Assembly (NCBI GenBank): GCA_033442325.1
Contig: JAWQFM010000010.1
Span: 1,492,730 to 1,556,729 of the forward strand
Source: Salpingoeca rosetta
Taxonomy: Eukaryota > Protista > Choanoflagellata
Reading direction: 5' to 3'
Length of the DNA stretch: 64,000 bases
The position numbers and the translations under genes were made by a program. Of the stretch, positions 56,338 through 63,322 are shown piece after piece. The notes beneath the pieces were generated by a model that worked only from the letters and a program-made list of their open reading frames with translations, ran no database searches and was not told the DNA's origin. Within the stretch, counting starts at the first letter, position 1; each line of letters begins with the position of its first letter.

Positions 56338-59300
56338 TCACTCCTCGAACATGCCCTTCTTGACAAAGTTTGGGCTCTTCATGAGCTCGCCCAGGGCAAA
56401 GACGTGCGAAATCTCCAGCGAGTCTGCATCAAGCAGCAGCAGGTCAGCGTCCTTGCCCACGGAGATGGTGCCCTTGGTGTCGAAGCGGAGCACGTCCGCC
56501 GTGTTGCGCGTCATCAGCGGCAGGATGCGCTGTAGGGGCCACTGAAGGTCAAAGTGCAGCTTCTTCACCAGCTTGAGCAGGCACTTGGGGTCCAGCATGC
56601 CATAGCGCAGGAGGTTGCCTTGCTCGTCAAAGGTTGGGAACGACCCTCCGGCATCCGAGGACACCGTCACCCGGTCCAGGTTCACCCCAGATGCAAAGTA
56701 CCGCGTCAGCGCCTGTGGATGCATGTTGGAAGGAAGAGGAAAAGGGGGGGGGGGAGAACGAGGGGCAGGCGTGAGCTTGGCCAACAATACCGACGGGTGT
56801 TATGATCGCAAGCAAGCCACAACAACAAGCATTCCACGCATACATGTCAACAACGCAACTGCATCCAACACACACACACACACACACACACAAGCACACA
56901 CACACACAAGCACACACACACACAAGCACACACACACACACACACACAAGCACAAGCGCAAGCACAAGCACAAACACGCGTGCACACATACACACGACAA
57001 CGTACGCTGATGGTGTCTCTGGAGCGGGCGGTAAAGTCGACGTATCCGCCCTCCTTGATCCAGCGTGCACCCTCCTCCACAAGCTCCTTGTTGCGGCTCA
57101 TGTGTGTTGGGTAGAAGCACGTGATGGGCAGGGCAGAGGCCATCACCGCAGAGCGCAGCAGCGGGATGCCGCCAGGGTTGTTGCCCATGTGCACATGCAC
57201 CACGCCAGCCTTGTTTGCAAGCATGCCACCAACACGGCACTCGCTAGCATTGTGGTGACGAAACAGGACACAGAGAGAGTATTTGTGTGTGAGTGTGTGT
57301 GTGTGTGGTTGTGTGTGTGGTTGTGTGTGTGTGCGTGAGTGTGTGAGTGTGTGTGTGTGTGTTTGTGTGCGCGTGTGTGTGTGTTTGTGTGCGCGCGCGC
57401 GCGCGTGTGTGTGTGTGTGTTTGTGTGTGAGTGAGTGAGAGTGAGAGAGAGAGAGTGTGTGTGTGTGTGTGTGTGTGTGCAAGGACGCTGAGACAACAGC
57501 TAGCAAAGACTTGGAAAACAATGAATGCACCGAGTGACTCCAATCTACACACAAGCACATGCAAACACACACCCTTCTCAGATATGTGCATGTTGGTGTG
57601 CATGCGTCTACAGGCTCACCTTCCGAGGACCTCGAGGTCGTGGACGGAGGGCTGGGAGCCGCGGTGGTCGCCAACAGCAATCTCGCCCACGCCAATGCAC
57701 TGCTCAATCAGGCAGATGTCTCGGCTGATGGTGCCCGTGATGGTCGGGGTCGGCACGCGATATGCGCCCGACCAGAAGTAGGCTGTGAGCCCCTCCTGGT
57801 TGAGGGCGCGCGCCTTGGTGAGCAGGTTCTCAAGGCTGCGCGAGACAGAGTCCGTGCCCGTGACGCCGACAACGGTGGTGATGCCTGCGGAGACGAGGGT
57901 GGAGAGCTGCATCTCTGGGGTGCGGGAGGATGGGCCCATCTCGCCGCCGCCGCCCGTGATGTGCACGTGCGGGTCGATGAAACCGGGCACGACAACGAGG
58001 CCCTTTGCGTCAATGACAGTGCCGTTGCAGGCGGTGATGACATCCTCGTACTTCTTCGTGTCGGCCTCGTTGAGCAGCGCAACAATGTGGCGGCCAGCAA
58101 GCAGCACGCCGGCATAATTGAGCGGGTCTGGCGAGTAGATGGCATCCGGGTTCTTGAGAAGCGTCATGCGCAGCGACGACGACACGCTCGCGCTCTGTGC
58201 AAGGTCGCGCTTGGGGATGGGCTGGCGCTCTGTCAGGCACGCCTTCGCCTGCTGGTAGAGCTGTGTTGCCTCCCTGTCTGTCTTGGCGACGGCAATGAAG
58301 AGACCAGAGAGGCCGCGCAGGTACACGAGCGGGTACACGCCCGACTCTGTCTCGCCAGGGGTGAAGGCGATGTCTGCGCTCTGCAGGCGGTGCCAGAACT
58401 GCTTGACCTTGAGGTTGGCCGGCGGCTTGTGCTTGAACACCATGAAGCTCTTGTCAGGGCTGTGGTAGGGATACGCAAAGAAGGGCAAAGAGGGGAGGGA
58501 GGGGGACAGCGAAAGCAGACAAGGCAACAAGAGGGATGCGTGAGTGCGTGAGTTGCTGCCACGCCTTGGGTCGATGCGTCTGCGCGCTTCAAGCAAGCCC
58601 GACTTCGCCTCATACGTTCCCACACACGCAGCAGCTACACACACACACACACACACACACACACACACACACACACACACACACACACACACACACACAC
58701 ACACACACACACACACACGCACGCACACACACACACACACGCACGCACGCACGCACACACACACACACACACACACCAGTTTGCCTCGAGGAAGAGCTTT
58801 GGGTAGTGGGCGCCGTTGAAGCGGCCCGTGTTGACGTCCGTGAGGAAGGGCATGCCCTCAACACTGAGGAAGTCAAAGCCGCCGGGGCCCTTGGGCTTGA
58901 TTGCCTTGAGCACCTTGTTCACGGCGCGGCTGCACGTCGTCTGGAAGCTGCGGGTGGCCTGCGACTTGCGCCATCCTAAATGGTGGAGGTGGGGTGTGAG
59001 CATGGCGTGAGAACAGCCAAAACCATGAAGCGAGCACAGGTAAAAGAAGCAGCACTCGAGTCAACACGGCCAAGCGCAGGGCGAACAAGCGACTGCGAAC
59101 ACGTGACTGACCTGCGTAGCCCGTGCCAACCATAATCTGGTCGACAAGCCCCTTTCCAAACACGGTGGGCTAAACACACACACACACACACACACACACA
59201 CACACACACACACACACACACACACACACACACACACACACACACACACACACACACACAAGATAATGGTGGAGGCGATAAAGCACGCATGCAAAGAAGC

Positions 59301-62300: not shown

Positions 62301-63322
62301 GCATGGACAGCAAGCACCACACTTTCACAGCGAGCGCCACACTTTCACAGCAAGCAACACACTTTCACAGCGAGCGCCACATTTGCACAGACCCAGACAC
62401 ACACACACACACACACACACGCACACACACACACACACACACACACACACACACACACACACACACACACACACACACGCACACACACACACACACACAC
62501 ACACACACACACACACACACACACACACACACACACACACACACACACACACACACGCACCGAGGGGGTGTCCATGTCGGTGGCGGCGCGGTAGAGGATG
62601 GCAGCCGAGGAGTGCTTGAGTGAGGGTGTGCCCTCGGCGAAGACAAGCAATCCCTTTTCCTGCAGGCGTGGCAGCCATTTCTTGGTAGACACGGTGAGCT
62701 TGCGAGGGACGAGCATGTACGTCTCGCCATCGCTCTTGGTCTGCTGCTGCAAAAGCGTTTCCAGGCACTTGACGGCGCCGCCGTGGTGGCTCTCCACCAT
62801 AAACGGGCCCGCATCCTCCGTGTAGATGACCTGGCGGGTGTGTGTGGGTGAGTGTGTGTGGGTGAGGTGATCAGATGGTGGGTGAGATAGCAATGGGTTG
62901 GTCAGGGAATACGGTGGAATGTTGCTTGTGTGCGATCGAGGCACGAACATGTCACGTGATCACACATACACACGCACACGCACCACGCACACACGCACAT
63001 GAACGCACGCATGCACATGAATGCAAATGCACACACACGCACACGCATACACACGCTCTCGCACACGCACATCACACGACACCTGGCTGTCGTCGAGGTT
63101 GAGGAGTTCCTTGCAAAAGTCGACAAAGTCGCGGGTGGAGTCGTGGTTTCCTGGGAGAAGAACAATGTCCTTGCTGCGGCGAAGGATGCTGAGGGCGCTG
63201 GCGGGGACAACGGTGTGCTGGAGATCGGTGGACGCGGGGGACGAGGCGAGGAACCAGACGCGGGGGCCCATATCGGCCCACTGCACATGGGAGCGCTCAA
63301 TAGCTTCGCTGATGGTGCCCAT
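56338..63322 (-). CDS. Fusion protein: two tandem ATP-grasp modules (first degenerate) + isoaspartyl dipeptidase (IadA) domain, about 13 exons
   Basis: ATP-grasp 2: VVVKPVFGAAGEGI, VILEEFL, GGFDF, LTDVNTGRFNG. IadA: PGFIDPHVHITGGGGE, GTD, SGAY, GEIAVGDHRGS, HVHMG, PTHMSR, SSDAGGS, GKDADL. The ligase C-terminus and IadA N-terminus lie in one uninterrupted exon (58459 to about 57620). Confidence 0.9.
60773..60872. other. Assembly gap (100 N) inside an intron of the ATP-grasp/IadA gene
   Basis: Run of N. Confidence 1.

Follow-up and report, generated by a model that had tools for sequence, protein, structure and literature searches.

Gene structure and transcripts

The window analysed here is a stretch of 64,000 nucleotides (nt) from the choanoflagellate Salpingoeca rosetta (assembly GCA_033442325.1, contig JAWQFM010000010.1, positions 1,492,730 to 1,556,729). 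It carries on the minus strand, at positions 63322-56338 of the window, a gene in which two ATP-grasp modules are fused to an isoaspartyl dipeptidase (IadA). The fusion gene comprises 13 exons, all on the minus strand, and its introns are all of the GT-AG type. A single open frame leads from the start codon (63322-63320) to the stop codon finishing at 56338 and gives a product of 1262 amino acids (aa). It is almost certainly a real and expressed gene of S. rosetta, coding for a cytosolic-looking protein composed of a dead ATP-grasp module, an intact ligase and a tethered IadA. An earlier sequence-only reading of the window had proposed one spliced gene of about 1,270 aa, which was borne out by the present model.

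The junction between ligase and IadA (...QQAKACLTERQPIPKRDLAQSASVSSSLRMTLLKN...) is located in open frame within exon 11 (58459-57620). The RNA depth over this junction was even, with values of 170-270; on the IadA part of exon 11 it was 135-270, without a break from the ligase part. The fusion is thus independent of the splicing model, as had been claimed. A complementary DNA (cDNA) contig (run X6, record 7, 1638 nt, depth 403) corresponded to 57620-58460, 58784-58974, 59111-59164 and 59428-59968. It spans the IadA half of exon 11, continues into exons 10 and 9 and reaches the ATP-grasp core in exon 8.

The splice sites were picked by hand as GT-AG pairs that join the open segments in frame and were then checked against orthologues. 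Stranded RNA sequencing (RNA-seq) reads of run X21 were mapped on a stretch of 6 kb. The exons were covered, the introns had a depth of approx. zero, and the first mates were nearly all found on the plus strand, as expected of a minus-strand mRNA. The reads supported nine of the twelve introns. Exact joints were observed for intron 3 (61794/62016, 31 reads), intron 4 (61187/61481, 50 reads), intron 5 (61057-60745, 5 reads), intron 6 (60406/60614, 17 reads), intron 7 (36 reads) and intron 9 (66 reads). The remaining three were supported by loose read ends, namely, 29 reading exon 9 sequence at intron 8, 21 reading exon 10 sequence at intron 10 and, at intron 11, 106 reads at 57620 that run on into exon 12 sequence. 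Introns 1 and 2 are too (CA)n-repetitive for read placement and intron 12 lies outside the 6-kb stretch covered; the sole support for these three junctions is the indel-free alignment of orthologues. Four full-length collinear orthologues from transcriptomes, 80, 62, 56 and 48% identical, showed no indel at any exon junction. In addition, of the words sampled from the 6985-bp stretch, a fraction of 0.54-0.57 was present in many public runs, which equals the exonic fraction (3789/6985). The transcript check by RNA-seq proposed in the earlier reading was therefore positive, both for the nine introns and for the link between ATP-grasp core and IadA half in the cDNA contig.

An assembly gap, given as a run of N at 60773-60872, lies inside intron 5 (60745-61057). 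The gap removes no coding sequence because spliced reads, indel-free orthologues and a contiguous internal repeat all agree on the junction. The modelled joint of 61058 with 60744 is found exactly in five stranded RNA reads, and the four full-length transcriptome-derived orthologues align across it without indels. Compared with eight orthologues, the protein lacks no residue. The repeat between the two modules is unbroken at this point, with FWYRLYDSGVNFRPGK in module 1 and FWHRLQSADIAFTPGE in module 2. Exon 5 ends in phase 2 and receives its third base from exon 6, which results in ...FWYRLYD-S-GVNFRPGKK... The length of intron 5 is only nominal, as the gap length in the assembly (55.4 Mb in 68 contigs) is an estimate.

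The RNA depth climbed from the 5' to the 3' end, with approx. 50 on exons 1-4 and 120-270 on exons 8-11 (3- to 5-fold), without a pile-up of read starts. This rise is probably due to 3' bias. It could also be taken, together with the gap inside the gene, as a sign of an artefact in which two neighbouring genes were wrongly joined or the gap sequence breaks the frame, given the depths of about 50 (5' end) and about 270 (3' end). Such an artefact is extremely improbable, since RNA cover is unbroken over the single exon that contains the junction, the reads spliced across the gap intron stay in frame, the cDNA contig links both halves and eight choanoflagellate transcriptomes yield the same full-length protein of approx. 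1260 aa.

Nearly all introns of the gene consist largely of (CA)n/(TG)n microsatellites, e.g. at 62400-62558, 59165-59408, 58627-58783 and 57290-57480. Apparent RNA joints from 60528-60551 to 62960-62983 were set aside as products of (CA)n-like repeats that lie in introns 1 and 6. Within intron 1, at 62967 and 62980-62983, a T>C change in approx. half of the RNA reads and a 1-base indel were seen in reads and contigs. They may represent allelic variation in RNA that is unspliced, or the reads may stem from a similar repeat elsewhere in the genome.

Domains of the fusion protein

Judged by its residues, the protein ends in a complete isoaspartyl (beta-aspartyl) dipeptidase of Type I. The 388 aa of this C-terminal domain can be aligned over their full length with solved IadAs (E. 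coli, Colwellia and others), with E-values of 5e-89 to 3e-80. The second part of exon 11 (57620-58173, aa 875-1059) encodes the beta-sandwich and the first half of the barrel with H943, H945, E952, Y1012, E1038 and R1045. It is followed by exon 12 (57006-57243, aa 1059-1138) with H1077, H1106 and R1109 and by exon 13 (56338-56712, aa 1139-1262 and the stop codon) with D1158, S1162 and the C-terminal strands of the beta-sandwich. The earlier reading had described a full IadA domain, and the motifs that it listed are all present: H943-x-H945, GGGGE952, Y1012, E1038, DHR1045, H1077, TH1106xxR1109 and SSD1158xxGS1162. On the TIGR01975 profile (cut-off 331.25 bits), the orthologue P0151 scored 398.4 bits over profile positions 2-389. 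Exons 11, 12 and 13 of S. rosetta scored 206.9, 74.2 and 91.7 bits on positions 2-176, 177-257 and 266-389, respectively, with a rough sum of approx. 373 bits. A search of the S. rosetta genome with the same profile identified the fused copy as its only IadA.

In the alignment to 1onw, 5xgw and 7cf6, the binuclear metal site is complete with H943, H945, the bridging E1038, H1077, H1106 and the catalytic D1158. E952, Y1012, R1045, R1109 and S1162 fall in the columns of E77, Y137, R169, R233 and S289 of the E. coli enzyme, which we take to be the residues holding the beta-Asp dipeptide. The bridging ligand is a carbamylated Lys162 (Type II) in E. coli and a Glu in Colwellia and most other IadAs, which defines Type I (PMC5517026). 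The Type I enzyme of Colwellia is octameric and its Glu is essential (PMC5517026). The assignment of the S. rosetta domain to Type I follows from the Glu (E1038) at the K162/E166 bridging position.

The second module (aa 440-855) is, according to its predicted structure, an intact ATP-grasp amino-acid/peptide ligase of the PGM1/BesA structural type. Exon 7 (60265-60406, aa 428-475) contains the connector between the modules and the start of module 2 (RIWCGSARPEYRRETQRYNLPN). Exon 8 (59428-60082, aa 475-693) encodes the first part of the module and its ATP-grasp core with K639 (59590-59592), the Gly loop and E671/E672 (59491-59496). After the short exon 9 (59112-59169, aa 694-713), exon 10 (58777-58975, aa 713-779) contributes the Mg/phosphate site with D747, D759-V-N761 and R764 (58821-58874), and the first part of exon 11 (58231-58459, aa 779-855) the C-terminal subdomain. 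The Lys and Gly loop, EEFL and D...DxN named in the earlier reading were all recovered, with K639 in VVVKPVFGAAGEG, the GAAGEG loop, E671 and E672 in LEEFL, D747, D759-x-N761 and R764. None of these catalytic residues varies among the orthologues or among 27 members of the family.

The AlphaFold (AF2) model of module 2 had a predicted local distance difference test (pLDDT) value of 93.5 and a predicted template modelling score (pTM) of 0.90. It shows a PGM1-type N-terminal domain, an ATP-grasp core and a C-terminal subdomain. The best structural match was BesA (8yi6) with Z 30.5 and a root-mean-square deviation of 3.2 Å over 379 residues, followed by a Streptomyces ATP-grasp peptide ligase (8ynd, Z 30.1), PGM1 (3wvr/3wvq, Z 29.3) and SAOUHSC_02373 of S. 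aureus (7r8q, Z 25). Generic PurK, PurD and biotin carboxylases reached Z values of approx. 22. The guess of a PGM1-type ligase in the earlier reading is in good agreement with the Z values of 29-30 to BesA and PGM1.

Sequence profiles detected this relationship poorly. A profile of 27 family members against the PDB gave weak ATP-grasp matches, i.e. 3df7 with E 3e-5 and cyanophycin synthetase with E 4e-4. A Pfam search of the orthologue P0151 (80% identical) did not find an ATP-grasp domain at E ≤0.001, and the ATP-grasp matches of single exons of the fusion gene were all below threshold. PF18604 (PreAtp-grasp, gathering score 27.5 bits) covers the family only marginally. The relatives P0010 and P0242 scored 24.5 and 51 bits, respectively. 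Given that Pfam finds no ATP-grasp match in P0151, the ligase part is invisible to routine annotation and the proteins are named only after their amidohydrolase end.

Module 1 (aa 1-432) is homologous to module 2 (30% identity, E 1e-60), as expected from the two ATP-grasp modules proposed in the earlier reading, which had not recognised that the first of them lost its catalytic residues. It begins in exon 1 (63083-63322, aa 1-80, RNA depth approx. 56) with the Rossmann-like part before the ATP-grasp core, and its N-terminus MGTISEAIERSHVQW is kept in orthologues. Exon 2 (62561-62830, aa 81-170) had an RNA depth of approx. 61. Exon 3 (62016-62212, aa 171-236) codes for a degenerate loop (ELMPIKALGGAGR) with Met in place of the ATP-binding Lys, and exon 4 (61482-61794, aa 236-340) for the core of module 1 with KT instead of EE in the hinge and N-V-T instead of D-x-N in the metal site. 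Exon 5 (61058-61188, aa 341-384), with RNA-read joints on both sides, and exon 6 (60614-60744, aa 384-428) complete the module.

For the residue check, every module of 26 long family members was aligned to the family profile. Module 2 of all choanoflagellates keeps the family-invariant K, G-loop, EE, Q, D, D-x-N, R and H. In module 1, all nine choanoflagellate sequences, S. rosetta included, have exchanged K for M, L, R or C, EE for KT, RQ, ES and others and D-x-N for N-x-T, S-x-T and others, and the Arg is deleted. With the ATP-binding Lys, the EE hinge, D-x-N and the Arg lost, module 1 is a conserved pseudo-enzyme, and module 2 alone of the two can act as a catalyst. For the dead module, a role as scaffold or pseudo-dimer partner is probable. 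A predicted-complex run of module 1 with module 2 returned a score of 0.00, which speaks neither for nor against such a pairing.

Ligase and IadA are connected by a linker in exon 11 (58174-58230, aa 856-874, ERQPIPKRDLAQSASVSSS) that is variable among species and predicted to be disordered. A model of module 2 together with IadA (825 aa, based on an alignment of 19 sequences) showed both domains well folded at an overall pTM of 0.54. Construct residues 422-438 (approx. aa 856-872) had pLDDT values below 50. The model suggests a flexible or disordered tether of approx. 17-19 residues that would hold the two enzymes like beads on a string.

Distribution and relatives

A set of 1.84 billion representative proteins was searched with exon 11, which spans the junction, followed by cluster look-ups and a second search. 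Proteins matching on both sides of the junction were returned. The architecture is present in eight choanoflagellates, in Guillardia, in Mantamonas and in many environmental eukaryotes, in some of them with three or four modules. Besides S. rosetta, it was found in Barroeca monosierra (1259 aa, 80% identity to the model), Microstomoeca roanoka (1261 aa), Choanoeca perplexa (1262 aa, 62%), Choanoeca flexa (1262 aa), Hartaetosiga gracilis (1308 aa, 56%), Salpingoeca infusionum (1260 aa) and Salpingoeca urceolata (1272 aa, 48%). More distant carriers are the cryptophyte Guillardia theta (GUITHDRAFT_74499, 1221 aa) and Mantamonas plastica (2009 aa), and many environmental fused proteins of 945-2168 aa were obtained. 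One environmental contig with the fusion could be assigned to a eukaryote since genes for a Ctr copper transporter and a G-beta WD40 protein adjoin. Most choanoflagellate entries are 'type:complete' open reading frames of transcriptome assemblies and provide independent evidence of the fusion as one message.

The earlier reading had suggested looking for the same architecture in other protists, and this was clearly successful. Its statement that the architecture is undescribed held insofar as no mention of a ligase-IadA fusion was found in the literature, including the main bioinformatic study of the genes for IadA and cyanophycin. The fusion is not unique to S. rosetta, as at least ten named eukaryotes carry it in public protein sets, where the entries lack an annotation or go by the names 'hypothetical', 'dihydropyrimidinase' or 'beta-aspartyl-dipeptidase'.

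A tree calculated for 112 IadA domains placed the fused ones, 23 in all, in one clade with a Shimodaira-Hasegawa-like approximate likelihood ratio test (SH-aLRT) support of 93. The choanoflagellate subclade had a support of 96, with S. rosetta beside Barroeca and Microstomoeca. The apparently solitary IadAs inside the fused clade are mostly fragments of fused proteins. As the fused domains form one clade, the fusion arose once or very few times, and within choanoflagellates it was passed on vertically. Degenerate and intact modules occur in pairs or strings across the family, and four-module proteins score weak, strong, weak and medium on the profile. Nearly every fused protein retains at least one fully intact module, which is not always the one adjacent to IadA.

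In the protein of Guillardia theta (P0244), a proline-rich segment occupies residues ~880-925, where H-x-H of IadA is expected; it looks like an unrecognised intron that was read through in the annotation. In Mesostigma viride, a protein of 971 aa (P0015) carries an IadA of the fused clade behind an MRN-interacting-protein (MRNIP) motif and not behind ATP-grasp modules. It represents either another type of fusion or the result of merged gene models. Apart from this protein, Mesostigma viride has an ATP-grasp homologue with a single module (P0214).

The ligase also occurs without IadA. S. rosetta itself has a paralogue of 890 aa (P0250, named 'hypothetical protein, variant' at NCBI) on the plus strand of the same contig at ~1405900-1410530, 82 kb upstream of the window. 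Its first module is strongly degenerate and its second ATP-grasp module fully intact, and its stop codon falls exactly where the tether to IadA starts in the fusion gene. The single-module homologues P0185, P0187 (Picozoa sp. COSAG02) and P0188, as well as environmental ones, bear a C-terminal RING finger (approx. residues 470-510), which hints that some members of the family act on or with proteins.

Among prokaryotes, a scan of one genome per species with one strict motif yielded six relatives. They are 32-38% identical, all have a single module and all belong to the Candidate Phyla Radiation (CPR; Saccharibacteria, Parcubacteria, Liptonbacteria). With a motif this strict, further relatives in prokaryotes may have been missed. 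None of the five CPR genomes checked holds an IadA, and the neighbourhoods of the genes contain neither iadA nor a consistent partner. The search for ATP-grasp genes next to iadA in bacteria, likewise suggested earlier, was thus negative for the CPR relatives with this narrow search pattern.

Possible functions and known systems

The conservation of the fusion across distant eukaryotes is good evidence that ligase and IadA share a metabolite. The following scheme, which rests on analogy, is tentatively favoured and should be considered as a working proposal that may well prove wrong. Module 2 would activate a carboxylate as acyl phosphate, most likely the side-chain (beta) carboxylate of Asp by analogy to BesA, and would join it to the amine of a second amino acid to give a beta-Asp-X dipeptide. 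The tethered IadA, which keeps the residues binding the free alpha-amino and alpha-carboxylate groups, would hydrolyse beta-Asp-X back to the amino acids. In this way the opposed activities could set the level of a small beta-aspartyl peptide that might act as a store, osmolyte, signal or transient protecting group of an amino acid. If the two were regulated reciprocally, as in glutathionylspermidine synthetase/amidase, no futile cycle would result.

The proposal that one protein makes and breaks a beta-aspartyl peptide is strengthened only by the ligation of a side-chain carboxylate by BesA and by the conserved fusion, and several observations weigh against it. PGM1 joins an alpha-carboxylate to peptide N-termini, and the staphylococcal enzyme 7r8q forms an alpha-linked Asp-Met product. 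Because both use alpha-carboxylates, the fold of module 2 does not fix its chemistry. To our knowledge, no member of this ATP-grasp family has been characterised or has a known substrate. The two-domain model (pTM 0.54) predicts no fixed interface and, for this reason, gives no sign of channelling. The ligase seems to have a life apart from IadA, as single modules without IadA, RING fusions and the IadA-less paralogue exist. Several relatives with three or four modules have a degenerate module adjacent to IadA and the intact one further upstream. It is also possible that a shorter isoform of module 2 and IadA is the source of the rise in RNA depth. Finally, opposed activities in one chain would waste ATP in the absence of regulation, for which no element was identified.

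A more far-reaching version of this proposal is doubtful. It would place the family at the core of an unrecognised, widespread eukaryotic pathway, in which a beta-aspartyl dipeptide or short polymer is made with ATP and dismantled by the built-in IadA, as the protist counterpart of storage of the cyanophycin or glutathionylspermidine type. The dead modules would then build a large particle based on the IadA octamer, and in the relatives with three or four modules the products would be longer or of mixed composition.

Alternatively, the two enzymes might work in sequence. IadA would free Asp and X from beta-Asp-X derived from bacterial prey, cyanophycin dipeptides or the cell's own damaged proteins, and the ligase would build a different amide from the released amino acid, coupling supply to use. 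Choanoflagellates eat bacteria, and IadAs are promiscuous for beta-Asp-X including cyanophycin dipeptides (PMC10206079). With the fused copy as the only IadA in the genome, general clearance of beta-Asp dipeptides must pass through this protein, and beta-Asp-Arg would come from outside as the genome lacks a cyanophycin synthetase. However, this salvage gives no hint of the ligase's product, a flexible tether without interface offers little kinetic coupling, and the photosynthetic Guillardia carries the fusion as well, so that prey digestion is not a general rationale. Taken together, sequential salvage is unlikely. A ligase acting on peptides or proteins like PGM1, at the N-terminus or an acidic side chain, would leave IadA as an eraser or clean-up enzyme that recycles beta-aspartyl fragments after turnover of the target. 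The peptide ligases PGM1 and 8ynd are among the nearest folds, the Picozoan and environmental homologues carry with their C-terminal RING finger a protein-directed module, and the multi-module relatives resemble assembly lines. Nevertheless, this is improbable: IadA needs the free alpha-amino and alpha-carboxylate groups of Asp, for which the binding residues are kept, so that direct action on a protein is ruled out; no candidate target is known; and the RING finger is fused to single-module relatives and not to the product of the fusion gene.

An absence of any shared substrate is considered to be just as improbable. The fusion would then co-express or co-assemble unrelated activities, e.g. 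by placing the ligase on an IadA octamer, or the ATP-grasp part would be an ATP sensor for the hydrolase. The flexible tether and the lack of a predicted interface fit this well, and since solved IadAs are octameric (PMC5517026) the fusion would multimerise the ligase. On the other hand, the fusion was kept, with one IadA clade, across very distant eukaryotes and through module duplications, and module 2 strongly conserves every catalytic residue, which would be needless for a mere sensor.

Irrespective of the product, two known enzyme families are combined here in an undescribed and conserved architecture with a pseudo-enzyme partner. In the general view, IadA is a housekeeping enzyme of bacteria and archaea. 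In S. rosetta, a close relative of animals, the sole IadA is joined to an amino-acid ligase, and the join is kept in choanoflagellates, a cryptophyte, Mantamonas and many uncultured eukaryotes. The architecture points to a so far unstudied metabolism of beta-aspartyl peptides in eukaryotes. It opens a direct route for discovering, among the metabolites of protists, a new beta-aspartyl peptide or a different small amide, and S. rosetta is genetically tractable. A whole ATP-grasp family has been hidden from routine annotation, and the fusion protein represents a clean example of a tandem of pseudo-enzyme and enzyme.

Concerning known ligases, BesA joins the gamma-carboxylate of Glu to an amino acid in the biosynthesis of beta-ethynylserine (bioRxiv 10.1101/2025.10.10.681649). 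Among solved structures it comes closest to module 2, and the two agree in how N-terminal domain, ATP-grasp core and C-terminal subdomain are arranged. Its omega-linked product, a dipeptide formed through a side-chain carboxylate, is the gamma-Glu analogue of the IadA substrate. In contrast to the fusion protein, BesA is a bacterial single-module enzyme encoded in a biosynthetic gene cluster without a fused hydrolase and, at approx. 18% identity, its specificity is not transferable. PGM1 and 8ynd (Pfam PF18604, PF18105) share the fold of module 2 with Z values of 29-30 at an identity of only 11-13%.

The cyanophycin synthetases CphA1 and CphA2 employ an ATP-grasp domain in beta-Asp-Arg chemistry, and the module 2 family matches the G domain of CphA locally (E 4e-4, approx. 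80 residues). Unlike CphA, the fusion protein has neither the N domain nor the Mur-ligase-like M domain, and module 2 is structurally much closer to BesA and PGM1. IadA finishes the breakdown of cyanophycin (PMC10273328, PMC10206079). The cyanophycin synthetase profile (TIGR02068) had no match anywhere in the S. rosetta genome, and a cyanophycin-like polymer from a CphA-type enzyme was excluded on these grounds. One Peptidase_S51 gene is present in the genome; it is uninformative on cyanophycin as the family includes the ordinary dipeptidase E.

Glutathionylspermidine synthetase/amidase (GspSA) unites in one polypeptide an ATP-dependent amide-forming enzyme and a hydrolase that undoes the same bond, and thereby sets a functional precedent for switching between synthetase and hydrolase. 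It differs from the fusion protein in its unrelated domains with an N-terminal CHAP amidase, their opposite order and another substrate, and the two are linked by analogy and not by homology. Known IadAs, such as CpsIadA (5xgw), 7cf6 and 8dqn (MEROPS M38), are stand-alone proteins of approx. 390 aa from bacteria and archaea. The IadA of S. rosetta resembles them in keeping all residues for the metals and the beta-Asp dipeptide, but it forms the C-terminus of an intron-bearing eukaryotic protein of 1262 aa behind two ATP-grasp modules.

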